This document shows, in pieces, positions 3,674 to 36,663 of a stretch of DNA of 64,000 bases. The notes beneath the pieces are model-generated. The model was not told where the DNA came from. It did no database searches and saw nothing but the letters and a program-made list of their open reading frames with translations. Made by a program: the position numbers and the translations under genes. Each line of letters begins with the position of its first letter. Position 1 is the first letter of the stretch. Origin of the DNA: Schizochytrium sp. TIO01 (taxonomy: Eukaryota; Protista; Bigyra: Labyrinthulomycetes); assembly GCA_004764695.1 (NCBI GenBank), contig SMSO01000025.1, positions 2,418,001 to 2,482,000 on the forward strand. Direction: 5' to 3'.

Positions 3674-6600
3674 ATGAACAGACTCCATGAATACTCCAGG
3701 AGGTCAACTGAATCAAATCTTATTTCCAGCAGACTGCGTCAACAAAACTTTGGTCTGTCTCAAACAAATGTGAACCGTCGCGTTAGCGAAAGCGATGTTT
3801 TACAGCTATCACCGATTTTGGCTGCGCATAGAACCAATATTCTACCCGATGACCTACAAGAACCTCGACAAGATGCGCATATTTCATTCGACAATAGCTT
3901 TCAGGAGAAAGTGATTGAGAGAACAGAAGAGGAAGAAAAACAACACACGGCCGCAACTCATATTCAAGTTGAGTATCGAAGATCAAAAAGTCGTCGCAAA
4001 AGTATTGAATGGAAGAAGGGCTTGAAAAATGCTCGTGAGATTCTAGAAGAAAACCTCATGACAGCTGATGGAAGCGTAGCTCAAGAAGCATCTGAAACAG
4101 CTTTCCAACTTCGCACCCACACTCCGCGATTTCTACAATATCTTCTAAGGTCGTTTGGTCCACATATTGCGTTGCCTATGTCTCACACAATCGTTCGAGG
4201 TGCAGTTGCATTTGTTGATATGAAAGGATTCACTAACCTTGCAGAGCACATTTCAAAGTCGCGGAATCGTGGAGCTGAATCTTTAATATTCATTGATGAA
4301 TCTATGCGTGTGGACAACTCATCAGAAATTACAAATGAAATCCTTACCAGGTACTGGAACTTAGTAGTTATGTATGTGAACAAGTTCCACGGGGACGTCA
4401 TTAAGTTTCTTGGAGACGCTGTACAAATTGTTTTTCCAATTCAGCCACTATTTTCTAATATTTCTGACTCTTCAGAGGCCGAACAACGTTGCCAGGACCG
4501 AGCATTAATGTTTGCAATAGAATTGATGAGAGCTTTGGAGTATTTTGAGGTTGATTCACAACACGCCACTACAGGACAGTTGAGCATGAAGATTGGCCTT
4601 TCATTTGGAGATATGACCTTTCGTACCGTTGGCGGTGCACTTTCCCGATGCGAATTTGTTCTCTCTGGAACGACGCCAGCTCGAGCAGCAGTTCTTAGTG
4701 GGAAAGCATCAAAAAATGAAACTGTTGTAAGTAGTGAATTCACTTCTATCAATGAATTTAAACCACCGAATTCCGTGATGGTGTCATATGTTCGTCTGAG
4801 AATTGGAGAGGGAGAGGAAAACATCGAAGCTTTATCAAAAAGGCTCATGAGTACCGATGACTATTTTAAGCTCAGCCTAAATCTTGATCCATATGCTGGT
4901 GAGCTCGAAGAGTTTGAAGATGATACAGAACCTATTGATACTGCGCAGTTATACAAGCTTGCATCGCATGGTATTTTTCGACGTCCTGGTAGCAGAACTC
5001 GAATAAGATCATCAGCATATAGCTCAGATGGTCTGGGAGGGCAAGATAGCATTTTTTCTTTGCAAGGTGTATCTATCTCTAGCTCTCGCCAAAATGCTAG
5101 CTCAAATTCTTTTGGATCTACTTCTGGCAGTGGTCATATCCGAAATTTGGCTTCTAATGCAGTTCTGATATCAATGCTCGCACGTTTTGTACCTGTCGTG
5201 GCCTTATCACAAATTGTAGTTGGATGTCATAGCAATCAATTGAGTCACCAATTCTGTAGCATTTTGTTTGTCCATGTAAAAAGCTACGATCCAGACGCGC
5301 CAGAAGATGAGCAAACCCGCCTCATGCAAAATGTGACCTTAGCTGTGCAAAATGCAACATATGAAGAGCAGGGGGATTTACGACAAGTAGCTGTAGATGA
5401 TAAAGGGTTTGTACTTATTTCTATATTCGGACTTTCTGCGGAGAGTTCTGAGAGTCATGGATTAGCAGCAGCTTGGAGGATAATGAGCTATTTTGAAGAA
5501 GAAAAAATTAAAGCTGGTCTCGGACTTACATCAGGTTTTTGTCACTTTGGGCCAACTGGCGCAAAGTCAAGATCTGAATATGCTGCAGTTGGAAGTAAGG
5601 TTAACCTAGCAGCACGATTCATGGCGAAAGCCTCAAGTTCAATTCCAATCACAGATACTACACCCTTTTCTGCCCTTCTTCTGGACCAAACAACATTAGC
5701 AGGACTCCCAGAAACATGCAGGACAAGTTTCATTGCTTCCTCTATTCGTGTCAAAGGTTTTTCAGACCCTGTCGATGTGTATTTAACTATGAAAAAACTC
5801 GAAAATCTGGAAAAGGTCATGTCGCCAACAAACCTAACTTATCGAGCATTTCACTTTTGCAAGGAATTGCAGCTTGTCAAAGTTAAAATGATTTCGGAGC
5901 AGTCCAAAAGATTAGTTAGACGTTCCCCAGGTAGCAATTTTGTGGCCGATATCTTTCGCATGACAATTGGCCTGGAACGTCCAGAATCAGTTCGGGATGT
6001 ACTAAAATACATTACTGTTATGGGATTTGTACATTCTAGAATTAATGTGAACATTCTCGAGTCCGTAATTAAAAGTGCTGCGGTACGAGCTGATGTTGAA
6101 TACGCCCTCAGTGTGATCCACGAAAGATTGCAAATTCTACGCACTGTTCCGGAACTGAACGTGAATATTTACGAGATTCGGGATGTAGAGCATCAGATTA
6201 AGCCCCTATATCAAACTCTGATGAGGTCTTTCAGACATCATATACACAGGGAGTTAGCAGAACGTTATAGAGATGAACTCATGCGAGGACATCTCAAAGA
6301 AATTCCCCGAGAGGTTATATATTCCACAATAGGCACCCATTTTGCTTTGGCAGGTATCGAGAATCACCTTGAAGCTGCAGAGTTTTTGAATAAGTCTCTT
6401 GCCATGGTCGCACATCGTGACTACGCTCAAGCGGAACTACTTGTGCAACGCAGTCAAAAGCTTATTCAGTCCTGGAGATTTAAGCAACAATGTAAAGCAG
6501 AGAAAGCCGCGGCACAGTCTTTCTTCTTTTTAGCCGGTGTGAAATCAAGACAAAATCAAATGGAAGAGACTTTTCGCAGCTATATCAAATGTCTGGCGTC

Positions 6601-7189
6601 ATATGATACCTTAGCGCCATTATTAAGCCCAAGGTGTATAAGTTCTGATTTATGTGAGCGCACAAGTGCGTTGTCCATTAAGGACTGCTCATGTTGCAAA
6701 TTCCAGGAAAACACTTGCGCTTTTTTGTTTATTCATTTCACCGATGATGAAAATGCAATGTCTTTTCATTTTCGATGCCTCTACATCTCCTCTGGCAATG
6801 GAAAGCAGGTTGATGTTGTTCCATGGGATTGCGTAACTTTAGATCAGAGTGTTGAAAACCCGACTCGGACAACCAACTGTATACTTCGCGAAATTCCGTG
6901 GCATGAGGCCCAAAAGAGGTATCAGCTTAATTGCATCGATTCGAAAGCCAAAATGTTTTATCAAATTCTTATTTTCAACTCGAGCACCTCGAAGCATATA
7001 TTTTCAAGTTTCGTAAATATTGGCCGCATCACATCTCAAGGAAGTCAGAAGTCTGGTTCGGGGAAGCAGTTTAGGGATCCTTCTTTGATCGAGCAATTAA
7101 CAGAGTCTTCTGAAGAAGCCAAGAGTGAAGAACAGAAAAATGAAGTAACGACTGACATACCTAAATCTCGTGCATGTAGCATACAGTAG
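3674..7189 (+). CDS. sAC/ADCY10-like class III nucleotide cyclase, paralogue 1 (IQ - C1 - C2 - helical/TPR-like - Cys-rich - CaaX)
   Basis: C1 motifs VAFVDMKGFT and KFLGDAV; C2 motifs RQVAVDDKG and EYAAVGSKVNLAAR, then VKGF; IQ motif AATHIQVEYRRSKSR; ends CSIQ. First in-frame ATG at 3674 (ORF track starts at GTG 3584). Confidence 0.9.
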   Translation: MNRLHEYSRRSTESNLISSRLRQQNFGLSQTNVNRRVSESDVLQLSPILAAHRTNILPDDLQEPRQDAHISFDNSFQEKVIERTEEEEKQHTAATHIQVEYRRSKSRRKSIEWKKGLKNAREILEENLMTADGSVAQEASETAFQLRTHTPRFLQYLLRSFGPHIALPMSHTIVRGAVAFVDMKGFTNLAEHISKSRNRGAESLIFIDESMRVDNSSEITNEILTRYWNLVVMYVNKFHGDVIKFLGDAVQIVFPIQPLFSNISDSSEAEQRCQDRALMFAIELMRALEYFEVDSQHATTGQLSMKIGLSFGDMTFRTVGGALSRCEFVLSGTTPARAAVLSGKASKNETVVSSEFTSINEFKPPNSVMVSYVRLRIGEGEENIEALSKRLMSTDDYFKLSLNLDPYAGELEEFEDDTEPIDTAQLYKLASHGIFRRPGSRTRIRSSAYSSDGLGGQDSIFSLQGVSISSSRQNASSNSFGSTSGSGHIRNLASNAVLISMLARFVPVVALSQIVVGCHSNQLSHQFCSILFVHVKSYDPDAPEDEQTRLMQNVTLAVQNATYEEQGDLRQVAVDDKGFVLISIFGLSAESSESHGLAAAWRIMSYFEEEKIKAGLGLTSGFCHFGPTGAKSRSEYAAVGSKVNLAARFMAKASSSIPITDTTPFSALLLDQTTLAGLPETCRTSFIASSIRVKGFSDPVDVYLTMKKLENLEKVMSPTNLTYRAFHFCKELQLVKVKMISEQSKRLVRRSPGSNFVADIFRMTIGLERPESVRDVLKYITVMGFVHSRINVNILESVIKSAAVRADVEYALSVIHERLQILRTVPELNVNIYEIRDVEHQIKPLYQTLMRSFRHHIHRELAERYRDELMRGHLKEIPREVIYSTIGTHFALAGIENHLEAAEFLNKSLAMVAHRDYAQAELLVQRSQKLIQSWRFKQQCKAEKAAAQSFFFLAGVKSRQNQMEETFRSYIKCLASYDTLAPLLSPRCISSDLCERTSALSIKDCSCCKFQENTCAFLFIHFTDDENAMSFHFRCLYISSGNGKQVDVVPWDCVTLDQSVENPTRTTNCILREIPWHEAQKRYQLNCIDSKAKMFYQILIFNSSTSKHIFSSFVNIGRITSQGSQKSGSGKQFRDPSLIEQLTESSEEAKSEEQKNEVTTDIPKSRACSIQ

Positions 7190-7377
7190 GTAGTATTTTA
7201 GAGCATAGAATCATCTTACAATTATTAAGAGACTTTACTAATAATAAATAAAAATTACAAATTACAAATTTACAAAAGAAATATAATATGTAAGAAGAGA
7301 GCTTTAATTCAAGGCCTCGTGACTGGGTGTATTCATGCACGCAAATACCGCCGCTCAGCCGTCAGTTATTATTACTA

Positions 7378-7510
7378 TTGTTGATTTATTGATTTATTGA
7401 TTTATTGATTTATTGATTTATTGTTTATTGATTTATTGATTTATTGTTTATTGATTTATTGATTTATTGTTTATTGATTTATTGATTTATTGTTTATTGA
7501 TTCATTATTT
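7378..7510. repeat. Tandem minisatellite (TTTATTGA)n with TTTATTG variants
   Basis: About 130 bp of 8-/7-bp tandem units between cyclase paralogues 1 and 2. Confidence 0.9.
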
Positions 7511-8000
7511 GGAAAAAGAAAGAAAGTATAAGTACAAAGAGCAACTTGCTTCAGAGAATACTGGAGAAGCATATGAACATCTCTATGGTTGAAAATAAAA
7601 CTTCCATTGGTATCAGAACAAGATTAGTTTTACATTTTTTTTTAATGAAAATAAAAAAGAAAAGAGAATCGTCAGATGTGTGACTACAATGGTACCTCTT
7701 CCTCTATTACAATAAAGTATACATAAGACCATGACAGATTATTTTGAAAGTGAATGGCTTTGCGACACCTTCGAAGAACAGAAGTCATGCTGCACTGCTC
7801 ATTACTGGTTGAAATATGCACTTTACCATTGATAGCTGTTAATATCTTTAAAATATTAATTTATATATATATTTAATTTTTAATTTTTTAATTTCTTAAT
7901 TTTTAAGTGTTCTAATTTAATTCTCTTTGGCTGGACTTTTGTTATCAGGTGAAAATGAAAACAGAATTTTTTTCAGTACCGTGTAAGTTTAGATTCATAA

Positions 8001-8035
8001 TTTGGACGAGTTTGGACGAGTTTGGACGAGTTTGG
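8001..8035. repeat. (TTTGGACGAG)x3.5 tandem repeat
   Basis: Three perfect 10-bp units plus a partial fourth. Confidence 0.9.
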
Positions 8036-8835
8036 TAAATATTTCGCCAATTAAATTACGATTCGGTCATTGAGTCACCGAGATTGAGTAAGCTCGGTTT
8101 TAAAGTTGGACAAATATAATCTGAACTACGGCGCTGTCGTATCAGGTTTCAGAACCTTTCACTAATACCTCTGTGGTGCTCTGTGAAGAGTGGAATTTGC
8201 TGTACTAGTTGATTATTTGAGATCAAAAAAAGGGGGATAGAAAACTTTTCTCTTTGCACATAGGCAGGTGGTACACAGGAACCTAGTGTTCTAAATCTCT
8301 ACAAGGAGGAAGTACACACTATGGCATCAATCCGTTGAATGAGCTTTTCCAAAATATTACTCCCTAAAAGTGCAAGTGAGAAGCAAGGCATTTGATATTT
8401 TCCAAAGGAATATTCAACTGATGAGAGACATACAAATAATATCAAGATAGAGGAGAACACATTCTTTCGAGTGTGTGGTGCTTTTGTTAATAGTGGTTCA
8501 GGAAGATGAACATGCTTGTTCCAGCAATAATTAGGTACACATTTTTATATATGGCATACAATTAGTGAAGTACGTACACATACCAAAAAGATGATCGCAT
8601 AACTTTAAACTAGGCGTAACGCATGAGGTGGGTTGTGTCCTGGTTTAGCAGGTTGGCAAGGGTTGACACAAGGCGACAGCGGCACCATTGATGCAACTGT
8701 GAGTGCAATCTTAAAAACAAATTCTTGAAAGCTGCGTTGGGCATAGTCATTCATCTTGCGTTTCTTCTTCAGCTAGCTGTCGTTTATAGAATTGTGAATA
8801 CGGCATCAAGGCTAGCGTAGGTCGCTGTCGCCAAG

Positions 8836-11800
8836 ATGTCAGAAGTCTTGCCAAGCGAAGCAAACAAATCAAGAGTCAGTAGTGAAGGTTCCACGCTGAA
8901 TTTATGGCTTGGCGAAGCTACAACTAATTCTATCAAAGAGAGATCTTCAGATAACACCAATGGGCACACAGGATTTATCAGTTTTAAAGTACGGCAGGGT
9001 TCATCTTTTCAGAGCCAACAACACCAGAACGCTGATATCGTGAAAATTGAGCGGCTGAGATCAGCGAAAATTATTCAAAGATGGTACCGCAAGGTTGAGA
9101 TGGATTATTCTCGTTGGCAATATAAATCGAAAATGCAACGTACGAAAGAAGGCCTTGCCTCCAAAATGGAGCAGATTGATGATGGCCATATACAGCAGGC
9201 TGTCGAAATTGAAGGAAAATTGCGTGCGCTTACTCCACAATACTTACACTGGCTTATTCGCTCAAGAGGCGTTCACTTTATTGCTCCGGAAAGGCATATG
9301 GAAATCGAAGGAGTTGTGGCATTCGTAGATATGAAAGGTTTTACCAACCTAGCTCAATATTTGGCAAGAAAGAACGCTGCAAGGAGAAACTCGTCAGCCT
9401 TTCTTGACGAAAACATGAATTTCAATCTTTCATCGGAACTTACAAATGAGGTACTCACGCGGTACTGGGAACTTGTCATTATGTATGCTCAGAAATTTCA
9501 GGGTGATGTTCTCAAATTCCTGGGAGATGCAGTGCAAATCATCTTTCCCTTAGAGCCTTTATTTTCGCATGAGGTAGATGTAGAAACTGCACGACGAAAA
9601 TGTCAGAATCGGGGCCTCATGTTTACGTTGGAGCTATTGCGAGCCTTGGAGTTTTTCGAGATTGAGTCATTCGATCTTGGCACAAACAGAATGAGCCTCA
9701 AAATCGGTCTAGCGTATGGGTTGATGGATATCCGTATCTTAGGGGGGGTCTCCTCAAGATGCGAACTTGTACTTTCAGGTCCAACCTCGGAGGTAGCTGC
9801 AACATTAAGTGGTAAGGCTGGACACGACGAGGCTGTTGTACATAAGAGCATCTTATTTGTAATTGAAAATCACAAAAGAGTTGATAAAAACAAGGATTAT
9901 GTTCGCTTGCGTGGCGGAAAGAAGAACTCAATGGGGGAATTATATCGCCTGCTAACTGAAACAGAGGACTATTTTGAGGCTAGTTTATTTCAAAATCCAT
10001 TCGAAGCTAGCTTGGGTGAGACAGGTAACTCTGCAGCAAACCTCTTTGAAAATGTTCGCGCACTGAATCGTTTTCAGACACTTGTTGCAAATCGAGCGAA
10101 AGAAAGACGCAAATCATATAGTTCAGTTGGTTCCTTGAACTCATACTCGCGGCTTTCTTCAACCAGAATGATACGAGATCTTGAGGATTCAATTACAGCC
10201 CCAAGAGGAAGCACTACAAATGAAAGTCTATTGAGTGGAGACTTACCATTTAGCACTCTCGGTCGATTTGTACCACAATGCGCACTCTCTCAAATTGAAG
10301 TGGGTTGTGCAACATCTACATTGGGACAAGGCTTCTGCTCTGTTCTTTTTGTTGAAGTGTGTAACTATGATCCAAACATGGCCCCTGAGGACCAGACTAG
10401 ATTTATGCAAATAGTCACGACGCTTGCTCAAACTGCGATTTACGAGGAACTTGGAGATCTTCGGCAAGTTGCAGTCGACGACAAGGGTCTGGTTGTCATT
10501 GGTATGTTTGGGATTGGTTCGCCTAATGCAGAAGAGGCTGCCTTTGCGGCGGCTAAACAGATTTTACAAAAATACAAAGCGAATGGTATAGCCGCTGGCT
10601 TAGGGCTTGCTTCTGGTGCTTGCCACTTCGGACCAACAGGCGCAGCAGGTCGCAATGAATATGCTGTTGTTGGTAGCACTGTAAATCTTGCTGCTAGATT
10701 AATGGCCCGAGTTTCTCAAGCAACAATACACGATAGTCATAATTCTTATTTATTAATCGACCAAAACACCTTCCTTGGCCTCTCACGCCATTGCCAAGAT
10801 GACTTTATAACATCAGAAATTAAAGTGAAAGGCTTCGATGCTCCTATTCAGGTGTTTCTTCCACTTAGCAGGAATAACACGCTTAAAGATTTGGAGGAAG
10901 CTCAAGTGCTTAAAGCACTAAGCTTTGAATCTGCGCCCCGCAAAGTAAAAGTTTCACAAGTTACAGACCGTTCAAAAATGAGTTTTCGTGAAAGGCAGCG
11001 ACGCCTTGGCTTTGTTGCTGATATTCAGCGGCTGACACTTGGTCTAGAGAGACCTGAGTCTGTTCAAGAGGTTCTCAAACATATCACCGTCATGGGAGTG
11101 GTAAATCCGCGAGTCGACTCTGCAGTCCTCTATTCAATCATACCAAGCGTGACAGTTTGTGCGGATCTTTCTTACTCACTAGAAATAATTGAAAGTGAGT
11201 TTCAAATAATTCGAGACGTAGGAAATCAAGTATACATGATCAACAATATTGAGCAGCACATCAAACCGCTATATGAAACGCTAATGCAGTCCTTTCGCAA
11301 AAGGCTGCATGAGGAGCTTGCTCAACTGTACGAGGAGCAACTCCTGCATGGGAACATTAAAGATATTGCAAACGACAGTCTGCACGTAATCATTGGTTCT
11401 CATTACGCGCTTGCTGGAGTTGACCATCACTTAAAAGCTGCAGATTTTCTTAATCAGGGTCTTGCTAAAGTTGCAAGACAAGATCTAGCCTACGCTTCCG
11501 TTTTAGCCCGTCGAAGTCGAAGGCTAGTAACTGCATGGCAACGTAAACAGCATGGTCGAGCAGAAAAGGCTGCAGCTACATCCATGTACTTTATCGGTAG
11601 TTGCGAGCTTAAAATGGGAAGTTTTGAGAAAGGTTTTGGCGCGTATGTCGCAAGTCTTCGATGCTACAGTGGTCTAGAAGGTATATTATGCCCGCCTTGT
11701 CAGTCACAAGATAATTGCTTTTTGCATAATGATTCATATGAATTGTGCTCATGCCTCAAGCTACGTCCTAACTTACACGCGTACCTGATAACTCATCACA

Positions 11801-12222
11801 CCGAAGAAGCTCATAGCTTGTCGCTTTACACTTTTGGAATGGAAATTAAAACCGTGGATGGTTTAACGTGCGAGCTGACTCCTGTGGAATGTGCGATAAA
11901 GGGTAATGTGAATCATAGCCAAGGCTCTACAACGTGCATGTTAGAAAGCCTTTCCAGTGAAGAGATGGACTCAAGGTATCAGCTTGCGGACAGAAAGAAG
12001 AATATTAGTACTTATTATAGCCTTTATATACCCGAAGCTCAAACTGCCAAATTAATTTTACATACTTTTGCCCAGTTGGCAAAAGTTACTGCAAAGGCAG
12101 AGATGAAAGCTCAAGGCCAATTGCGATCGGTTTCACGAACAAATACACAAGATATATTGGGCAATTCGGACCCAAGCAACAAAAATACGCCACCTCAATC
12201 TAAACTGTGTAGCATTCAATGA
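8836..12222 (+). CDS. sAC/ADCY10-like class III nucleotide cyclase, paralogue 2 (same architecture as paralogue 1)
   Basis: VAFVDMKGFT, KFLGDAV, RQVAVDDKG, EYAVVGSTVNLAAR, VKGF; IQ motif SAKIIQRWYRK; ends CSIQ; collinear with paralogue 1. Confidence 0.9.
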   Translation: MSEVLPSEANKSRVSSEGSTLNLWLGEATTNSIKERSSDNTNGHTGFISFKVRQGSSFQSQQHQNADIVKIERLRSAKIIQRWYRKVEMDYSRWQYKSKMQRTKEGLASKMEQIDDGHIQQAVEIEGKLRALTPQYLHWLIRSRGVHFIAPERHMEIEGVVAFVDMKGFTNLAQYLARKNAARRNSSAFLDENMNFNLSSELTNEVLTRYWELVIMYAQKFQGDVLKFLGDAVQIIFPLEPLFSHEVDVETARRKCQNRGLMFTLELLRALEFFEIESFDLGTNRMSLKIGLAYGLMDIRILGGVSSRCELVLSGPTSEVAATLSGKAGHDEAVVHKSILFVIENHKRVDKNKDYVRLRGGKKNSMGELYRLLTETEDYFEASLFQNPFEASLGETGNSAANLFENVRALNRFQTLVANRAKERRKSYSSVGSLNSYSRLSSTRMIRDLEDSITAPRGSTTNESLLSGDLPFSTLGRFVPQCALSQIEVGCATSTLGQGFCSVLFVEVCNYDPNMAPEDQTRFMQIVTTLAQTAIYEELGDLRQVAVDDKGLVVIGMFGIGSPNAEEAAFAAAKQILQKYKANGIAAGLGLASGACHFGPTGAAGRNEYAVVGSTVNLAARLMARVSQATIHDSHNSYLLIDQNTFLGLSRHCQDDFITSEIKVKGFDAPIQVFLPLSRNNTLKDLEEAQVLKALSFESAPRKVKVSQVTDRSKMSFRERQRRLGFVADIQRLTLGLERPESVQEVLKHITVMGVVNPRVDSAVLYSIIPSVTVCADLSYSLEIIESEFQIIRDVGNQVYMINNIEQHIKPLYETLMQSFRKRLHEELAQLYEEQLLHGNIKDIANDSLHVIIGSHYALAGVDHHLKAADFLNQGLAKVARQDLAYASVLARRSRRLVTAWQRKQHGRAEKAAATSMYFIGSCELKMGSFEKGFGAYVASLRCYSGLEGILCPPCQSQDNCFLHNDSYELCSCLKLRPNLHAYLITHHTEEAHSLSLYTFGMEIKTVDGLTCELTPVECAIKGNVNHSQGSTTCMLESLSSEEMDSRYQLADRKKNISTYYSLYIPEAQTAKLILHTFAQLAKVTAKAEMKAQGQLRSVSRTNTQDILGNSDPSNKNTPPQSKLCSIQ

Positions 12223-13996
12223 TATACAATCATCACATGTTGGAGAAAGTCAAATGCATATAATTAGATACTCTGAATTATTTAGATAGAGTGTATAAAG
12301 TGACTTTAAAGACTATATGAAACCGAAGATCCCTTAGCCCATTTAATGTATAGGACCCTGTACTCATAACGCACTTGTGATAAAGATTGTCTTCTTAAAC
12401 GTAATTCGATGATGAAATTATCTAACCTGTTTTTTCTTTTTCCTTTTTCTTTTTCACTTTCTCTAAAAAATGCATTCGAAATACGAATCCTGCCATGGTA
12501 TGTTTAAACTTGAGAAATAGTCAAAGAATGTGCTCGATCTTATGAATGGATTAGCGATAGCAATTAATATTTGAAAAAGTATATAGTCTGCTTAAAGTCT
12601 TTCTCAAACATAGGTCCAAGGATTTATTCGTTAAAATTCGTCAAAATGAGCTAAGTCCTTGTTTAAGTTTACTGCCACATCATACAAGATACAAAAAGTA
12701 TGCACATGATCTACATCCATTGCACATGTATATTTAACACTTGCATGGTCACTTGAACATGGAGTTGAGATTGAACCTTAACTTCAAAGTTTCTGGTCAG
12801 AAGTAATATTTGTACACTATGATACATATGTTATATTTTTAAAAAAATATTTTTAAAAAAGAAAAGAAAAAAAAAAGAAAAGAAAAAAGACAAGATAGAT
12901 GTCTATCAACCAGGGAGACTCAGTGTTCGTGTCTTTGCGCATAACCTAGAGGTGGATAAACGTGGTAACTATAGTCCTAGAAGGGAACAATAGATACTGC
13001 TTTTACTCGGGCCCTAGTGAATTGCGAATCATCCTTTTCTAAGGTTTACCGCACTACTATTCACCAATACGCTGCACACCAAAACCTTCCACTGCATTGA
13101 TTTATTATATATTAGTATATACTTTCTATAAAGAATGAACACATTTCCACAAAATACCACAACGGTAAACTTAAAAATAAATGAAATCTGCAACGGATCT
13201 CATCACTGTGTACCTCAGCCTCAAGTTATTTTAAAAGCTAATCTTGTGTGTTTAATCGGTGTTGGAAGAGATCAGCTTCAATTAAAGAGCTCTATTCATG
13301 GTTTTACTTCATGCTTAAAGAAAGTCGTGTTATATGTAGTGTTCGTTCAAATCATTTCTTCCTGTGCCCCATATTAAAGGTAAAGTTTATTAAGTTCCGT
13401 TATCCTTTGTGATATCTACATATACCGAAAGAGAGCCAGTAATTAATTTTTGTTTAGATCTTCCTGCTTCTGCATTGCGGCTTACCAAAGTTTCACAATT
13501 CACTTTCAACTTCGTTTGAATATGGGAACAAGAAACAAGTCTTACACCAACTGCTGAAGAGCAAATCTACAGTACATTTTTTATTGCCAACCTCAACTTT
13601 TTCAGAGACTAAATGAATATGTCATATACTTATGTACAAAATACTCAAGGAACACAGTTCATCTCACTTTCTCTCGTGACATCTTAAAGGACTGTAAGAC
13701 AGTTAATAACACACTTTACAGTTCTCATTCTAATAGTACTTCGAGTTGTAATGTTTATTAGAGTGGTTGGCAAATGTGTGATTAAATACCAATAATGCAA
13801 TAAACGGTGCCTGCAAAGCACGCATCTGTGCTTTGTGTGCCAGGAGGAAGTGCCCGCCCGATCTCCATGTCTCAGCGATTCACTCTACAGGGCCTCACGT
13901 CTGGGTTGTGTATGGTTCATTGATTCCTCTGTTTGGTCACACAAAAACTTTAATTGCCAGAACCTGGGAAACTCATACCTCTACCACGTTTGCGAG

Positions 13997-16900
13997 ATGG
14001 AAAGCGAGAGCAACAGCGACTTTTCACACAGCAATAGTGGTGTATGGCTTGGGAAAGCTATAAAGGCCACCACTGAGCAAGGTGCAGGTCGTTCCTCAGT
14101 TCATAATCGCGTGATTTCATTTGAAACTTTGAAATTTAGTCGTCACTCTGATTTATTTGATATTAAGGCTGAGAATGAAGAAGAAAGAAAACTCCACATT
14201 GCAGCTACTCAAATTCAAAGATTCTTCAGAAAATTATCGGTGTCACGAACTCAAGTCCAATTTCGCCAAAGGCTGCGCCAGTGCTTCCTCCAGCTCGAAG
14301 AGACTTCTGAAAACAAAAACTCAGAGGCAGCCCAGCGCCAGGCCCATGAAATCAAGTCAAAAGTACATGCCCTTACGCCTGGGTTAATACACTGGTTTCT
14401 TCGCACGAAAGGTGTCTCAGCAGCAAATCCTGGATCCACACACATCCTCCATGGAGTTGTCGTTTATATATTCGTGAGCGGATTGACTGAGTTTGCTCGT
14501 CAAGTAAATCAAGTGAAGAAGGTTGGCGATGTAAGCGCTGTTTGGAATGGCCAATTACAGCCAATCGAAGATCAAACTGGGACAGAAAGTATGGGTGCCA
14601 TCGAGTGTCAGTCAAATCTTAATAGTGACGTTTTAATGCGTTGCTGGGATATGATAATAGGCAAAATTCACCATTTTCAGGGTGATGTGGTTAAAATTTT
14701 AGACGATGTTGTCCAGGTGACCTTCCCAGTGGATATCCTATTTAGCTCTGTTAAAAAGCACGCCACTGCTAGATCAATGTGCCAAAGTCGTGCTCTCTTG
14801 TTTTCTCTAGACTTGATCGAAAGACTTAGAACATTTGAAATCGACAAGAACGTGCTTGCAAAAGATCATGTGCGATTGAGGATAGGACTTGCTTATGGGG
14901 AGATGAAGTTTCACATAGTTCGGTCTCTTATGCGCTCAGAGCTGCTGGTAAGCGGCGAAGCAGCAGACGAAGCAGCCACATTGTGCGATAAAGCAGTTGA
15001 TACAGAAGTACTTGCTCACAAAAGTATTGGAGACATCAAAGATCGAATTGTTTTGTCATCCAATTTTGTGCGATTGCGGATGGATGGTTCACAGCCTAGT
15101 ACGCACCTTTTGTATGAGCGCTTGATAGTTAGCAAAGACTACATTAGCTTGAGCCAGACCGATGATCCATATCATCATAATGTTGCACCACGGACAAGAG
15201 GGGGAAGAAAAAGGTCTGTTGATGCACTCCCCTCTCATGAAAGCTTTGCAAAGATCGGTATGACAGCTTCGTTTAAAATTGTTGAAACCCGAAGCTATCA
15301 TACAGAATCCGGGATCTCCTTCTCACAATCATCCGACTCAATGATGAATGAATCGCACGAATCATCTATTTTAAGAGTCCCTTCACAAAACTCATTTACT
15401 GCAAATGCGGCCATGACAATTGCAACATTTATTCCAAATAGAGTGTTTTCAAGTATTGTTCTAGGTGCATTTGTAGCCCAGCTCGAACGAGCTTTCTGTA
15501 CAGTTGTGACAATTGTAGTACCTGGTGTTGCTCAGTACGGATCTGACTGTGACACCGATTCTATGCAAGAAATTGTTAGTATTGTAGATGCGATTGTAAA
15601 AAATCAGTTGGGTGATTTGCTACAAATATGGACTGATAGTCGAGGATTTGTAATCGTCGCAATTTTTGGAAATCTGAGTGCTCAAGCAGAACATATGGGC
15701 ACCACAGCCGCAAGGGAAATTGCGTTAGAGTTGCACCATATGGGTTTCGAATCTGCTATTGGAGTGGCGTCTGGGTTCTGTAAAGTTGGCCTAATTGGCG
15801 CACTCACACGATTCACTTACAGCTCCATTGGAGATGTCCCTCGATTATCTGCGCGATTAGCTAGTCGGGCATCATCCACTCAACTTGAGAAGTTTCAGCG
15901 ACCAATTATTTTGGTTGACCAAACAACATTCCTCGGGCTTCCTCCGCATGAGAATCAGAAATTCGTAGTTTTTGAGTTGTATGTGCGTGGCTTTGAAGAC
16001 AACGTACAAACATTTTTACCACTGTATTACAAGGAGACACTGGAAGACTTAGAAAAACACAAAGTTCTTGCAGATCTTGCGATTATTGGCTCACACAAGA
16101 TTGTTAAAGTTACCGATGCGTCTGAAGAGGCTCACAGACGCGCAAAATGGCAACGTCAAGAGGGTGGGTTTGTGGCAGATGTGTCGCGCCTATCTCTTGG
16201 TCTTGAACACTCAGATGCTGTTCAAGCTGTTTTGAAGCTCCTGGCAATCATGGGTACTGTGAGCGCTCGAGTTGACACACAAATCGTACAAGCGATGTTT
16301 GCAGAGTCTACTACTGCTGCTCACCTTGAGTATTCTTTAAATGTACTTCGTTCTAGTTTACAAATTATACGTTTTGTCGGTCAGAATGTTTACATGATTA
16401 ACAATGTTCAAGGCCAAATCAAACCTATATATGCGAGTCTAATGCCTACCTACCGTATGAAATTGCACGGGCTGCTGGCAAATATCTATGCTGAGAAAAT
16501 GAGCATAGGAGAGATAACAGACATCCCCCAACACACTCTTCAAATTATGATAGGAACGCACTACTCTCAAGCAGGAGTGGAATGCCATCAAGAAGCAGCT
16601 ACCTATTTGAACCAAGCAATTACTGCAGTTTCGTATGAAACTCCAGCGCAAGGTGTTGCACTGGCAAAACGAAGTTACAACCTAACTCGTTCGTGGCAAA
16701 ACTTTCAGCATTCACGAGCGGAGACAACATCTGCACAAGCCCAATTCCTTATTGCAAAATTTCAAAGGAAGATGGGCAACCTGCAGTCTAGCTTCAATGC
16801 GTTCGTTGCTTGCCTGCGTTCGTTTACTGCACTTGAACCTCTATTGCATCCACCTTGTACGAATCTTGAGACATGTGAGTACCTCAAAGAGAGTTTGGAA

Positions 16901-17365
16901 TCATGCAGCTGCTATTCTTTACCCAAAAATTTGAGGGTTTACCTATTTATTCATCACGCGCCAGATCCCTTTTCAGAATTTCAATTTCGCTGTTTAGAGA
17001 TCTCTACTGCATCGGATGTGTTTCTTGTCAATCCTGTAGAGTGCATTATAAACGGAAGCTTCGAGAAACGTCCCAGCCCTACAGCAAACTGCAAACTTGT
17101 CGAGCTGTCTAATTCTGAGCTTGAACGCCATTATTCAGTGTTCAATAGAAATCCAAATGTACGAAAATACTATCAAGTGTTAATTATGAACCGCCACACA
17201 AGTAAATATATCCTGAAGAGTTTTTTGCAGCTCGCAGCTATTTCAATCAAAGCAAAAGCAGCTGAATATATTCGAACTTCTTTTGCCCCCGCAACGTCTA
17301 GCTCATCCATTTTCTCGCCAAAAGAACCCGTGAAAATCAAGTCAAACATGTGTCTATTGCAGTAA
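13997..17365 (+). CDS. sAC-like cyclase paralogue 3, catalytically degenerate (probable pseudo-cyclase)
   Basis: Collinear with paralogues 1 and 2, but VVVYIFVSGLT replaces VAFVDMKGFT, KILDD replaces KFLGD, TDSRG replaces DDKG and VPRLSAR replaces VNLAAR; IQ motif AATQIQRFFRK; ends CLLQ. First in-frame ATG at 13997. Confidence 0.85.
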   Translation: MESESNSDFSHSNSGVWLGKAIKATTEQGAGRSSVHNRVISFETLKFSRHSDLFDIKAENEEERKLHIAATQIQRFFRKLSVSRTQVQFRQRLRQCFLQLEETSENKNSEAAQRQAHEIKSKVHALTPGLIHWFLRTKGVSAANPGSTHILHGVVVYIFVSGLTEFARQVNQVKKVGDVSAVWNGQLQPIEDQTGTESMGAIECQSNLNSDVLMRCWDMIIGKIHHFQGDVVKILDDVVQVTFPVDILFSSVKKHATARSMCQSRALLFSLDLIERLRTFEIDKNVLAKDHVRLRIGLAYGEMKFHIVRSLMRSELLVSGEAADEAATLCDKAVDTEVLAHKSIGDIKDRIVLSSNFVRLRMDGSQPSTHLLYERLIVSKDYISLSQTDDPYHHNVAPRTRGGRKRSVDALPSHESFAKIGMTASFKIVETRSYHTESGISFSQSSDSMMNESHESSILRVPSQNSFTANAAMTIATFIPNRVFSSIVLGAFVAQLERAFCTVVTIVVPGVAQYGSDCDTDSMQEIVSIVDAIVKNQLGDLLQIWTDSRGFVIVAIFGNLSAQAEHMGTTAAREIALELHHMGFESAIGVASGFCKVGLIGALTRFTYSSIGDVPRLSARLASRASSTQLEKFQRPIILVDQTTFLGLPPHENQKFVVFELYVRGFEDNVQTFLPLYYKETLEDLEKHKVLADLAIIGSHKIVKVTDASEEAHRRAKWQRQEGGFVADVSRLSLGLEHSDAVQAVLKLLAIMGTVSARVDTQIVQAMFAESTTAAHLEYSLNVLRSSLQIIRFVGQNVYMINNVQGQIKPIYASLMPTYRMKLHGLLANIYAEKMSIGEITDIPQHTLQIMIGTHYSQAGVECHQEAATYLNQAITAVSYETPAQGVALAKRSYNLTRSWQNFQHSRAETTSAQAQFLIAKFQRKMGNLQSSFNAFVACLRSFTALEPLLHPPCTNLETCEYLKESLESCSCYSLPKNLRVYLFIHHAPDPFSEFQFRCLEISTASDVFLVNPVECIINGSFEKRPSPTANCKLVELSNSELERHYSVFNRNPNVRKYYQVLIMNRHTSKYILKSFLQLAAISIKAKAAEYIRTSFAPATSSSSIFSPKEPVKIKSNMCLLQ

Positions 17366-17696: not shown

Positions 17697-19193
17697 TTAT
17701 CGCAAACTTGGAGAGCCTAGTGATGATGATGATGACGAGTCATCCCCGCTCGAACCTGCACCTGCCTCGACATCTTCAGTGTCAAGTATTCCCTGGTGCG
17801 TTGGAAAAGAGCTTACTTGCTCATTATTAGAAACGCCGATTGAACCTATAGCAGGTGGAGGCGGTACTAACTGATTGGAACCCACTAAAGCCGGCTTTGA
17901 ACCAGTAACGCTTTTGCGGCAGCCTGCTTTCTTGTTTGAATTTGTAAACTGCGTAGAGCTATTGAGCGTCGTTGTCAGACTAGGTAAGGGTTTGAGCTCT
18001 CGTAGGTGCCTGGGACTGTGGACTACCTTTGCAGGCGATGCAGTTTCTCCGTCAACCCAAGAATGCTTCAGTGCATCAGCTGCTGTGAGTCTCTTGTTAG
18101 GGTCTATATTCAATAAGCCGCTGAGCAGATCCTTGGCCGAAGAACTCAGGTTCTTCTCCCAAGAAGGATACCTCAATTTGTAGTCTGTCCGCCGCCTTTG
18201 CCGTTTATCATCAAATGGAAATACTCCACACAAAAGAACAAAGGTAACTATGCCGAGCGCCCAAACGTCAATCGATCTTGTATATGCTTTACGCCGCATC
18301 ATCTCAGGAGCAATATAGCCCATCGTTCCAAAGAATGTACGTGTACTCAATGGTGAAGCAATATCCGGGGCACGATCTACCGAGTTTGCTGCCGTAGCCA
18401 GAGTTTTAGAAAGACCAAAGTCAATAATCTTGAGACGAATTTCGCTGTAGTGTTTCACCTTCTCTTGCAGGAGTATATTCTCAAGTTTCAAATCTCGATG
18501 AATGACATTGTGAGCGTGCATGTACGCTACTGCGCTTATCAATTGCCGCATAAGAAATGCAACTTTTGCTTCTGTCAATGTACTGTTTGGACGGCTTATA
18601 AGATAGTCAAAGAGCTCCCCTCCTCGAGCAAGCTCTGTGACTACATGGAGGTGAGTGGAAGACTCAAACATATCCTGGAGTTTGATGATATGTGGATGAT
18701 CGAGTCGTCTTAAAATATCTACCTCGCGGCGAAATTGTGGTAAGAGATCGCTGTACAGCATCGTCACTTTACGTTTGTTGATTACTTTCACTGCAAATGC
18801 ACTTTGAGTGCTCTTTTGGACACATGCAAAACATCTCGCTGTGCTCCCTTTCCCAAGCTCTTCCTTGAGATCATAAACATCTGAAAATCTACGATTAGTG
18901 CCTTTTTTATTGTTCTCAGATCCTCCTTCTTCGAGACGACGGTAAGCACTTGCGTGAGAGCGCCAGCCCACATGACTGGAGTCTGGAATGTTATACTTTC
19001 GACCCCATAAGCAAATTCCGCAAATAGTCACAGGGCAGCACGAACCTCCCTCATTCTCATCACTAAACTGACTGCTGCCTCTCGTTCGAAGGGGTCTTCG
19101 ATCATCCACATCAAACTCGGCTTCATTCGCACCATTGCGATGGCCTTCGTGACCTATTCCTCCCAGCCCCTCGGCGCCAAGGTTTACCAGCAT
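17697..19193 (-). CDS. Ser/Thr protein kinase, CAMK group (CaMK1-like)
   Basis: GKGSTARC Gly-loop, AVKVI, ELARGGELFD, HRDLKLEN, DFG, GTMGYIAPE, DVWALG, KRLTAADALKHSWV. First ATG at 19193. Confidence 0.93.
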   Translation of the reverse strand: MLVNLGAEGLGGIGHEGHRNGANEAEFDVDDRRPLRTRGSSQFSDENEGGSCCPVTICGICLWGRKYNIPDSSHVGWRSHASAYRRLEEGGSENNKKGTNRRFSDVYDLKEELGKGSTARCFACVQKSTQSAFAVKVINKRKVTMLYSDLLPQFRREVDILRRLDHPHIIKLQDMFESSTHLHVVTELARGGELFDYLISRPNSTLTEAKVAFLMRQLISAVAYMHAHNVIHRDLKLENILLQEKVKHYSEIRLKIIDFGLSKTLATAANSVDRAPDIASPLSTRTFFGTMGYIAPEMMRRKAYTRSIDVWALGIVTFVLLCGVFPFDDKRQRRRTDYKLRYPSWEKNLSSSAKDLLSGLLNIDPNKRLTAADALKHSWVDGETASPAKVVHSPRHLRELKPLPSLTTTLNSSTQFTNSNKKAGCRKSVTGSKPALVGSNQLVPPPPAIGSIGVSNNEQVSSFPTHQGILDTEDVEAGAGSSGDDSSSSSSLGSPSLR

Positions 19194-20381
19194 CTTGATC
19201 TGGCTGAAACAAGCAACCGACTGCCAGATCAATCTAGTATTGCAGTCTCAGTTTGCAGTCTAGCTCAACTCCTAAAACCTAACAAAAACTAAACCCAAGT
19301 CTTTGGTCTACGTCTTCGTCCTCGCCTTTGTCTTGATCTTTGGCTTCACCGTTGCCCATTCGAATCTCCTGCAGAGGACTTTGTTATCATGGACTGGGAT
19401 TCCTTATTCTATTCACTTCCCTGTACTCGATGACGTTCTGTTGAGGTTCTGATTTCGTTATAAGTAATGTTTATTCCTTCACAGGATACTTATCCCTCTC
19501 TAGAACACGAGCGTCTCGGTAACGGCTCATGCAGAAAGCTCGGCAATAGACACGTCATGAGGAGCCAAAGTGAATTGTTTCCCTTTAGCATGACCTTCAG
19601 CATCAAACAGTGATTTTAATGGGTTGAAATACATGTGGACATGTCTCTCCTTATGTTTTGGTGCTACCAGAAGAAAATAAGTAGTAATTGTAAGAATGAA
19701 TATTATTACTTTTATAAAGCCATCGATGGAAGTTGCGACGATTCGTCAATGAAGGGCCAAGATGCGGTGCTCTCTAGTGCTTAAATACATCTGGACACCT
19801 CCTTAATCAATCAACCAATCAGCTAATCCAAAAGAACACCAAAACAATTGCTCCATGCTCTATTGAGGACCAAGGTCCAGGCGCTTGAGCTATGCACTAC
19901 GGTACTAGGTGGCCAAGTTAGGTGTTCTGCTTCCTTTTTTTGTTCAATATTAAAATCTTACGCTGGTTTTTTTTAATTTGTTCTAGGTGGATGCAAACAT
20001 CTTTTCATCTGCTAGTGTTTTCGCATGAACCCTTCCCGCCATTTTTTTAATTGAACACGCGCGCGTTTCAACTTGCAGGCGTGGAGTAATTCAAAGCTTG
20101 ACGAAAGTTCTGTTTACTAGAACATAAACCATATGGTGATTTGTCTCAACTTGCTATAATGCAATATTTTCTCTCACGCTCCTAAAAGCGTAACCATGTT
20201 TCGTTTTTTTTTAAATCTTTTTAAAACGCAGAAACTACAACTATTGCTGACGGTGGATTATTTCATAAAAAGACTAAAAATACATATAAATTAGATTGTT
20301 AAAGAAAAAAAAAGTCATCATACATTGCTAATCTTGAAACAACAGAACAGCTCCAATTTCCATAACATTAAAAAGAATGAT

Positions 20382-36114: not shown

Positions 36115-36663
36115 ATGCCAGAAGCACATTGCCACAACCCTTCTGCAGTGGTCCCATATGATCCTAATCAAGTAAACGCGGAAACTGGAGAACAAGATGA
36201 TTTGGCTGGAGACTTACAAATAACCCAGGAGCAGATTGAGCAGTTCAAAAAAGTTTTTGATCGCTTTGACAAGGATGGCGGAGGGACTATCGATGCAGAA
36301 GAGCTCGGCTCGGCTATGCATTCCTTGGGCCAGAACTTAACAAGACTGGAGCTTCAGGAAATGATTGAAGATGTCGATTTAGATGGCTCTGGAACTATCG
36401 ATTTTCCTGAATTCTTGGACATGATGCGCAAGAAATTACAGGATCGTGATACAGTCGAAGACCTTGTTGACGCTTTGAGACTTTTTGATCCTAGGAAATC
36501 AGGAGCGGTCGGTGTAGTTGTTCTTCGCCACGCACTTCTGAACTTAGGGGAGAAGATGACTGAAGAGGAAGTTGACTTTGTGTTTAGCCGCTTGCCTCGT
36601 AATGCAGATGGTAAATTCGATAGTCAAGTTCTTGCTACAACGTTGCTTTCAACTTATATCTGA
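36115..36663 (+). CDS. Calmodulin-like protein (intact EF1/EF2, degenerate EF3/EF4)
   Basis: [30 protein letters not shown]...LGQN...[23 protein letters not shown] closely follows the calmodulin N-lobe; [11 protein letters not shown] retained in the C-lobe. Confidence 0.9.

Follow-up and report, generated by a model that had tools for sequence, protein, structure and literature searches.

Three neighboring genes of Schizochytrium sp. TIO01, here termed W1, W2, and W3, belong to a six-gene family that is a variant of the soluble adenylyl cyclase (sAC)-like enzymes and that, as far as can be told, has so far not been described. The genes lie within a 64,000-nucleotide stretch of contig SMSO01000025.1 (positions 2,418,001 to 2,482,000; C24:2418001-2482000 in the coordinates used here for the genome), which we refer to as the window and which is part of a 64.07 Mb genome of 37 contigs that was searched as a whole. 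The best explanation of the data taken together, and one that we regard as reasonably probable, is that W1-W3 represent thraustochytrid-restricted ADCY10-like cyclases that have lost the nucleoside triphosphatase (NTPase) of their relatives, have kept the winged-helix and tetratricopeptide repeat (TPR)-like arm, and carry a Cys/His-rich domain, a C-terminal CaaX box of the farnesyl type, and an N-terminus with an IQ-like helix. All of the functional statements on the family that are made herein are drawn from sequence.

A Family of Six Genes

W1, W2, and W3 (Table 1) are intronless, uninterrupted open reading frames (ORFs) in the same orientation that align with one another from end to end, with pairwise identities of 39% for W1/W2, 30% for W1/W3, and 33% for W2/W3. 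The spacers that separate them are AT-rich, with lengths of ~1.65 and ~1.77 kb and a GC content of ~0.35, compared to ~0.43 in the genes. An earlier note on this DNA, which was made from the letters alone, had described a tandem triplet of co-oriented and substantially diverged paralogues, and as an account of the three plus-strand genes this holds. The term triplet, however, is too narrow, as a six-frame search shows that the family in the TIO01 genome consists of six genes (Table 1), two of them catalytically intact and four degenerate. Outside of the family the genome contains ~12 further sAC-like cyclase genes, most of which have a Walker A motif, and the comparison with these other sAC-like genes covered 11 loci, four of which are incomplete.

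Distribution and Phylogeny

The W1-W3 profile was run against a set of 1.84 billion representative proteins, and both the C-terminal module and the cyclase were matched in only nine of them. Five are the TIO01 genome's own proteins, which are present in the protein set only through Logan assemblies, three are from Hondaea fermentalgiana (GBG28239.1, GBG29986.1, and GBG23974.1), and one is from a European Nucleotide Archive (ENA) metagenome contig. Whereas these nine members score 315 bits or more, all further matches score 200 bits or less and are located almost wholly in the cyclase domains. A word-based protein search with the whole of W2 and with its residues 700-1128 returned only the genome's own proteins, within a length window that excluded a 3067-residue Hondaea model. 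The proposal that these genes form a lineage-specific family is therefore borne out, in that members were found only in TIO01, H. fermentalgiana, and one metagenome contig.

The 3067-residue Hondaea protein, GBG28239.1 (P0002), is annotated as 'Adenylate cyclase type 10' and consists of three family units, here termed a to c as they follow one another along the chain, with units a and b missing exactly their C-terminal tails and CaaX boxes. In a maximum-likelihood tree the family falls into an intact and a degenerate clade, each with 100/100 support. The intact clade comprises W2 with Hondaea unit b, W1 with Hondaea unit a, and the ENA protein (P0008), while in the degenerate clade Hondaea unit c is the sister of W3 plus the three other TIO01 paralogues, and Hondaea P0007 and P0009 are also present. 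The W1/unit a and W2/unit b orthologue pairs, together with the split into two clades, imply that both the division into live and dead enzymes and the W1/W2 duplication predate the divergence of the two genera.

GBG28239.1 appears to be a gene model in which three tandem genes orthologous to W1-W2-W3 were wrongly joined, which means that the tandem order, as read from the units inside the fused protein model, is conserved in Hondaea. The Hondaea annotation, which unites three family units in one protein, could also be taken at face value, such that the W1-W3 ORFs would be exons of one giant gene, but this we consider scarcely credible. Each unit in the window ends with its own CaaX box and its own stop codon (TAG in W1, TGA in W2, and TAA in W3), which is followed by a 1.6-1.8 kb AT-rich spacer, and the lack of tails in Hondaea units a and b is what would be expected from predicted introns that skip the stop codons. 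We likewise consider it very improbable that W1-W3 are unexpressed relics whose conserved ends were inherited without function. The paralogue on contig C30, which is broken over three frames in this assembly, fits such a view, and the frame breaks could reflect a true decay of the gene, a difference between strains, or a faulty assembly, but the same copy is intact in another assembly (P0006). Moreover, five of the ORFs, of 1117-1171 codons each, are uninterrupted, and although divergence has brought them to ~30% identity, the IQ core, six Cys residues, and the CaaX box are still in place, and both the orthologues and their order are preserved in another genus. We treat W1-W3 as three separate genes in what follows.

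Cyclase Domains and Catalytic Residues

Tandem class III cyclase domains of the sAC type had been recognized in all three proteins from the outset, and this assignment is confirmed by comparison with solved structures. When the W1-W3 profile was searched against all PDB sequences (hmmsearch), the best match was human ADCY10 (E 2.5e-15), which aligned over both halves in C1-C2 order, and the second cyclase domain alone also matched ADCY10 (E 3e-11). The W1 and W2 proteins score above the 21.9-bit cut-off of the Pfam cyclase family PF00211 (37.4 and 33.1 bits, respectively), while Pfam returned no PF00211 match in W3, even though W3 aligns with W1 and W2 throughout. As a statement of descent and fold, judged by these alignments, the term sAC-like is correct for W1-W3. 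Analysis of hydrophobicity windows revealed no convincing transmembrane (TM) helix in any of the three, in agreement with the earlier note. The best 19-residue window (value 2.03), residues 498-516 of W1, was considered as a candidate TM helix and rejected because it falls in the second cyclase domain and aligns with the conserved start of ADCY10 C2.

The equivalents of ADCY10 residues D47, K95, D99, D339, N412, and R416 are all kept in W1, W2, Hondaea unit b, and ENA P0008. Hondaea unit a also keeps the active set, except that the D47 position is absent from its shortened gene model. The metal and transition-state positions of W3 are F, D, R, and R, with Phe in place of D47 and Arg in place of N412, and the active residue set is lost not only in W3 but also in the three other TIO01 paralogues and in Hondaea unit c, P0007, and P0009. 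The equivalent of K95 is Lys in W1-W3. The suggestion that the window contains two active copies is thus upheld at the level of residues, as W1 and W2 keep the catalytic set and W3 does not. Each of the W1-W3 proteins is a single-chain C1-C2 pseudo-heterodimer, and W1 and W2 would make a cyclic nucleotide, with ATP and GTP both possible as substrate.

It counts against the ADCY10-like reading that Arg176, the bicarbonate residue of ADCY10, is replaced by Ala in the hidden Markov model (HMM) alignment, which is a comparison at the sequence level. In addition, the purine-selecting pair, K334 and T405 in ADCY10, is Gln/Ala in W1, W2, and Hondaea units a and b, and Gln/Thr in ENA P0008. Given these replacements, neither bicarbonate regulation nor substrate specificity can be transferred from ADCY10 to the family, and the Gln/Ala pair leaves the choice between ATP and GTP undecided for W1 and W2. 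Their output could accordingly be cGMP, as with the Dictyostelium sAC homologue SgcA, in which case they would be guanylyl or mixed-specificity cyclases. Canonical guanylyl cyclases have a Glu/Cys or a Glu/Gly pair rather than Gln/Ala, which counts against this possibility, as does ENA P0008, which has Thr at the second position like ADCY10. On the other side are the Gln/Ala pair itself, present in W1 and W2 and in both of their Hondaea orthologues, and the guanylyl side activity to which a Gln-containing pair has been tied in a mycobacterial STAND-type class III cyclase; the primary work on this activity, that of Castro et al. in 2005, reportedly concerns Rv0386. A preprint that makes this link names the mycobacterial cyclase as Rv2488c (bioRxiv 10.1101/2024.03.06.583649). 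We consider a guanylyl or mixed specificity unlikely, and W1 and W2 are treated here as ADCY10-like enzymes that would produce a cyclic nucleotide. There are 13 class I phosphodiesterase matches in the TIO01 genome, and hence cyclic-nucleotide turnover exists in this organism.

Probable Loss of the NTPase and Retention of the Arm

The sAC-like enzymes usually carry a P-loop NTPase, as the earlier note had remarked. A search of W1-W3 for the Walker A motif [AG]xxxxGK[ST] was empty, and Pfam gave no AAA_16 match. In the C-terminal 450 residues of W1-W3, Pfam also found nothing beyond a match of TetR_C_37 in W2, which is below the cut-off (E 0.003) and was dismissed as chance.

The C-terminal 456 residues of W2 were modeled with AlphaFold2 from eight sequences, with a mean predicted local distance difference test (pLDDT) value of 78.9 and a predicted template modeling (pTM) score of 0.72. 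The order of elements in the model is ~55 poorly modeled residues, a helix-strand-helix-helix-hairpin unit, and ~150 residues of paired helices, followed by a domain rich in beta structure, a helix of 30 residues, and a tail without order. When the model was compared with 48,161 chains using VIA-align, the top match was MalT (8bob_D; Z 10.2, root-mean-square deviation 4.1, 149 residues aligned, model residues 56-268), and the next matches were to the winged helices of ORC/Cdc6, Apaf-1, Dark, and plant NLR proteins, and then to TPR proteins. By VIA's own note, a Z of ~8-10 as seen here for winged-helix and TPR proteins is in a range that is common for helical models, which tempers the assignment. 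A Foldseek search of the W2 C-terminal model against the PDB gave nothing at E ≤ 0.001, the best row being 6mfv, a STAND-TPR protein, with an E of 0.019.

Sequence profiles point in the same direction as the structural matches. The HMM of the family C-terminus has matches in several of the STAND-type sAC-like cyclases, at a distance of 100-150 residues behind AAA_16; it did not detect the winged helix of TIO01's own STAND-type cyclases, such matches being only in other, mostly unnamed proteins. With hhalign, columns 91-203 of the family align with columns 767-872 of the STAND-type sAC-like cyclases (probability 67.9%, E 4.9e-5, 28% identity over 103 columns), and the matched STAND-type region, which is ~290 residues after Walker A, includes the 'RxxLHxxxAxxYE' helix. 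These lines of evidence are each of moderate strength but agree with one another, and we conclude with moderate confidence, on the basis of profile alignments and models, that the family has lost the NTPase together with its helical domain and has retained the winged helix and the first part of the TPR arm.

The Cys/His-Rich Domain

The arm is followed by a Cys-rich domain that had been noted from the start, in which six Cys and one His are invariant across the six TIO01 paralogues. All six Cys are also kept in Hondaea units b and c, while Hondaea P0007 is without one of them. A point against the architecture proposed here as a whole is provided by the distant member ENA P0008, which is without most of the Cys cluster and also without the IQ motif in its modeled N-terminus. 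Modeled alone from six sequences (pLDDT 83.3, pTM 0.77), the domain forms a beta sandwich-like unit on a long helix. The fold of this model was without a match, as the best VIA result had a Z of 4.0 with no chain at Z ≥ 5, the best Foldseek E was 0.15, and the ESM Atlas gave no match.

The CaaX Box and Probable Lipid Anchoring

All nine of the family proteins for which a C-terminus is present end in a CaaX box, and the nine boxes are CSIQ, CSIQ, CLLQ, CILQ, CIVQ, CAIQ, CAIM, CLVQ, and CALM. The box is retained across the family at overall identities of 25-57%, and the tail that precedes it is variable and disordered, which makes it implausible that its conservation is due to chance. A Gln or Met at the X position of a CaaX box selects farnesyltransferase. 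The genome encodes the beta subunit of this enzyme (E 5.7e-104), as well as those of geranylgeranyltransferase-I and RabGGTase, and it also encodes the processing enzymes ICMT (112.7 bits) and an Rce1-like protease (59.6 bits). Lipid anchoring of the W1-W3 family proteins is therefore probable, as far as it can be predicted from their termini and the enzymes encoded.

What weighs against a firm anchor is the sequence immediately upstream of the CaaX Cys, which contains only one to three basic residues, with neither a polybasic stretch nor a second or palmitoylatable Cys. Farnesylated proteins need a second membrane signal for stable anchoring to the plasma membrane, and with a single farnesyl and no second signal the expected outcome is a weak, transient, or endomembrane type of peripheral binding rather than firm attachment to the plasma membrane. 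The view of W1-W3 as membrane-anchored through their CaaX boxes thus stands with respect to the boxes themselves and the enzymes that would process them, but the anchoring that had been implied is probably weak or transient.

CaaX-like ends are also found outside of the family, in TIO01 in at least two STAND-type sAC-like cyclases. Those of 1548 residues (C3 ~1873000-1878608; P0071) and 1701 residues (C4 ~1617000-1622000), end in CTIV and CTIQ, respectively, and the Hondaea 'adenylate cyclase type 10' GBG26506.1 ends in CAIL. Hence, while every complete C-terminus of the family has the box, it is not a hallmark of the family alone, and from these endings prenyl tails may be a wider habit among the soluble-type cyclases of thraustochytrids. 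No description of a naturally prenylated nucleotide cyclase was found in the literature searched, in which the matches concern engineered CaaX tags.

The IQ-Like Helix and Calmodulin

The earlier note had assigned an N-terminal IQ motif to each protein and, from this, a calmodulin input to the system. The conservation on which this was based is clear. The sequence IQxxxR, usually as AAxxIQxxxR[KE], is present ~45 residues before the first cyclase domain in all eight members with a comparable N-terminus, with the AA preceding the IQ core in W1 and W3, and over the first ~130 residues no columns other than I, Q, and R are the same in all eight. The motif departs from the canonical [ILV]QxxxRGxxxR in that position +7 has K, R, or E in place of Gly in every case and in that W2 and W3 are without the second basic residue, at +11.

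Profile searches weigh against a calmodulin-binding IQ motif. The Pfam IQ profile gave nothing on W1-W3 even at E ≤ 10, and the matches in two paralogues outside of the window are sub-threshold, namely PF00612 at 12.9 bits, against a cut-off of 20.3 bits, in the paralogue upstream of the window, which is the best PF00612 score, and IQ_SCN5A_C at an E of 0.0044. As an internal control we used the gene at 20385-24437, in which Pfam readily detects IQ repeats (159.5 bits summed). A profile of its ~20 genuine repeats matches at the aligned motif position in five family members, but the cyclase motif scores only 2-7 bits and unrelated cyclases score alike.

The genome encodes a canonical calmodulin (E ~1e-82 against solved calmodulins), and docking of this protein to residues 64-118 of W2 gave a score of 0.35, compared to 0.01 for the best of three controls, a result rated as weak support. 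In the calibration of this test, 51 of 78 solved complexes attain the mark, as do 2 of 108 mismatched pairs. With a score ≤ 0.60, however, no more than 5 of the 78 solved complexes attain it, while all four of the passing mismatches (of 180) lie in that range. At least 61% of the contacts are common to the runs, with a partner pLDDT of at least 62. A further point against is that the pass may reflect memory or likeness, as calmodulin-IQ complexes are abundant among solved structures.

Taking the motif and the docking model together, we consider it about equally likely that the IQ-like helix does or does not bind calmodulin or a calmodulin-like protein. Of the claim of an IQ motif with calmodulin input, the IQxxxR core is confirmed in all eight members, whereas the input is no more than plausible, as the motif scores below the Pfam cut-off and at only 2-7 bits against the genuine repeats, and docking lends weak support. 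One alternative is that the cyclases are prenylated but that the so-called IQ is a structural or autoregulatory helix, or a site for another EF-hand light chain, with Ca2+/calmodulin control being absent or indirect. The empty Pfam result for W1-W3, the 2-7 bits against repeats of the same genome that Pfam detects easily, the invariable replacement of the Gly at +7, the missing second basic residue in W2 and W3, and the weak docking support all favor it, as do the calmodulin-like protein (36115-36663) and the centrin that are encoded in the genome. It is harder to reconcile with AAxxIQxxxR being the one fully conserved island within 130 N-terminal residues of eight comparable members, with the absence of the Gly from several genuine IQ repeats of the neighboring gene as well, and with a docking score that is above all three controls by 0.34. 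We rate this alternative as rather doubtful, and in the following an IQ-like helix that could recruit calmodulin or a relative is retained as a part of the proposed architecture. A different route to calmodulin, by binding of the latter to a farnesylated polybasic tail (PMC7216078), was considered and is unlikely, as the tails of W1-W3 hold one to three basic residues.

Several other genes in the window have a Ca2+ or calmodulin flavor. The plus-strand gene at 36115-36663 encodes a 182-residue calmodulin-like EF-hand protein in which the EF-hands of the N-lobe are intact and the C-lobe appears degenerate, like that of a myosin light chain, and it is a candidate alternative partner of the IQ-like helix. 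The minus-strand gene at 20385-24437 encodes a 1351-residue protein with an EF-hand pair and WW domains in addition to its ~20 tandem IQ repeats. Convergent with W3 on the minus strand (17697-19232) is a gene for a 511-residue Ser/Thr kinase, the best solved relatives of which are Ca2+/calmodulin-dependent kinases IV, II, and I (E 4e-58). The proximity of the kinase, the IQ-repeat gene, and the calmodulin-like gene to W1-W3 is, in a eukaryote, no evidence of linkage.

Relationship to Known Systems

In the search of 1.84 billion proteins, the cyclase domains of the family had their nearest relatives among the STAND-type sAC-like cyclases, in which a cyclase is combined with AAA_16, a winged helix, and TPRs, as in Rv0386, SgcA, and the long TIO01 genes. 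The likeness extends beyond the catalytic domains, as the part of the family proteins behind C2 can be aligned with the beginning of the winged-helix/TPR region that follows the NTPase in these enzymes, the top structural match is to MalT, and some of the TIO01 enzymes also end in CTIV or CTIQ. In contrast to the STAND-type enzymes, W1-W3 lack the ~300-residue NTPase plus helical domain, the winged helix comes ~55 residues after C2, and the N-terminal AAxxIQxxxR is absent from the STAND-type TIO01 genes examined. With ADCY10 (PDB 4CLF/4OYA) the family shares a single-chain C1-C2 arrangement without TM helices and, in W1 and W2, both metal Asp residues, the Lys at K95, and the Asn/Arg pair. W1-W3 differ from ADCY10 in being without the P-loop NTPase, in the changes of R176 to Ala and of K334/T405 to Gln/Ala, and in the addition of an IQ-like helix at the N-terminus, of the Cys/His-rich beta domain, and of a CaaX box at the C-terminus, and half or more of the W1-W3 family is catalytically dead.

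AC1 and AC8 are calmodulin-regulated adenylyl cyclases with 12 TM helices, and AC8 has an IQ-like motif in C2b. The combination in W1-W3 of a class III cyclase with an IQ-like putative calmodulin site at a membrane is reminiscent of these enzymes, but AC1 and AC8 belong to another subclass and are held in the membrane by 12 TM helices, whereas in W1-W3 the motif is N-terminal and membrane contact would be by a predicted farnesyl. With regard to the lipid tail itself, W1-W3 resemble Ras/Rho GTPases and lamins in having a Cys at position -4, an aliphatic a2 residue, Gln or Met as X, and a disordered linker, and in that the processing enzymes are encoded in the genome. They are unlike them in the absence of an upstream polybasic stretch or palmitoylatable Cys, and in that the cargo is a cyclase of ~125 kDa.

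Proposed Mechanism and Significance

The family proteins have an N-terminal extension of ~130 residues with one conserved IQ-like helix, and in the mechanism that we envisage they would be farnesylated, clipped, and methylated, thereby becoming peripheral on a membrane, probably weakly or on endomembranes. W1 and W2 would produce cyclic nucleotide at that membrane, and the IQ-like helix would recruit calmodulin or a calmodulin-like EF-hand protein. The dead paralogues, which keep the IQ-like helix, the arm, the Cys-rich domain, and the CaaX box, might act as non-catalytic partners of the live enzymes or as competitors for the same binding sites. Calmodulin control is no more than plausible, as is a regulatory role of W3 and the other dead copies. 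We put forward more tentatively, and hold to be somewhat doubtful, the bolder reading that these are the first naturally prenylated nucleotide cyclases, a thraustochytrid invention in which the NTP switch of a STAND-type soluble cyclase was replaced by a farnesyl tail, a docking helix for calmodulin or a calmodulin-like protein, and a new, possibly metal-binding Cys/His beta domain, with an old dead clade tuning two live enzymes at the membrane. On this reading, the family would represent a self-contained module that converts Ca2+ into a cyclic-nucleotide signal.

Soluble-type cyclases are by definition not attached to a membrane, and little is understood of the large regions at their C-termini. 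The exchange of an NTPase for a lipid tail, if true, would be a new way to bring the synthesis of cyclic nucleotides to a membrane. In addition, the family supplies a putative docking helix for an EF-hand protein, a Cys-rich domain of unrecognized fold, and a natural set of active enzyme and pseudoenzyme pairs. Thraustochytrids are open to genetic manipulation and are used industrially for lipid production.

Table 1. Coordinates of the W1-W3 genes, of their parts, and of the other family members in the TIO01 genome (positions are those of the window unless a contig is given).
Feature	Position	Strand	Description
W1	3674-7189	+	ORF; 1171 aa from first ATG, ends CSIQ; PF00211 37.4 bits; catalytic residues D,K,D / Q,D,A,N,R; Hondaea unit a is the orthologue
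W2	8836-12222	+	ORF; 1128 aa from first ATG, ends CSIQ; PF00211 33.1 bits; catalytically intact; Hondaea unit b 56.5% identical
W3	13997-17365	+	Pseudo-cyclase; 1122 aa from first ATG, ends CLLQ; first metal Asp to Phe, transition-state Asn to Arg; no PF00211 match; in degenerate clade with Hondaea unit c
W1 IQ-like helix (AATHIQVEYRRSKSRRK...)	3950-4012	+	I, Q, R columns kept in 8/8 members; sub-threshold to IQ profiles
W2 IQ-like helix (SAKIIQRWYRKVEMDYSRW)	9061-9120	+	Docked to own calmodulin, 0.35 vs 0.01 for best control
W3 IQ-like helix (AATQIQRFFRKLSVSR)	14201-14257	+	Best score of the family against in-genome IQ profile, 7.3 bits
First cyclase domain (C1-like)	W1 4109-4807; W2 9220-9918; W3 14363-15085	+	ADCY10 alignment; W2 with both metal Asp and the Lys matching K95
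Second cyclase domain (C2-like)	W1 5174-5791; W2 10255-10866; W3 15416-16024	+	ADCY10 alignment; W2 with Asn/Arg of VNLAAR, and Gln and Ala at purine-selecting positions
Winged-helix and TPR-like arm	W1 5936-6625; W2 11008-11688; W3 16166-16846	+	AlphaFold2 model, VIA, hhalign
Cys/His-rich beta domain and long helix	W1 6626-7039; W2 11689-12096; W3 16847-17251	+	6 Cys and 1 His invariant; fold without match
W1 CaaX box CSIQ	7175-7186	+	
W2 CaaX box CSIQ	12208-12219	+	Ends ~30-residue disordered tail; model residues 425-456 with pLDDT < 50
W3 CaaX box CLLQ	17351-17362	+	
Fourth family gene	C24:2407927-2411136	opposite to W1-W3	~7 kb upstream of the window; six-frame genome search
Fifth family gene	C24:2297345-2300674		~120 kb upstream; six-frame genome search
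Sixth family gene	C30:8503156-8506329		Reading frame broken in this assembly (three frames); in a Logan assembly, P0006 is the intact protein of 1116 aa

Other Observations

Outside of the family, the minus strand of contig C30 (3210229-3217611) contains a single ORF of 2647 residues that combines matches to sAC-like cyclases and a Walker A motif with a phosphodiesterase domain of class I (276.5 bits), and the product would be one protein able both to make and to degrade cyclic nucleotide. Within the window, a GH5 cellulase domain (E 7e-12) is part of the 1337-residue protein encoded by the plus-strand gene at 26933-30946.

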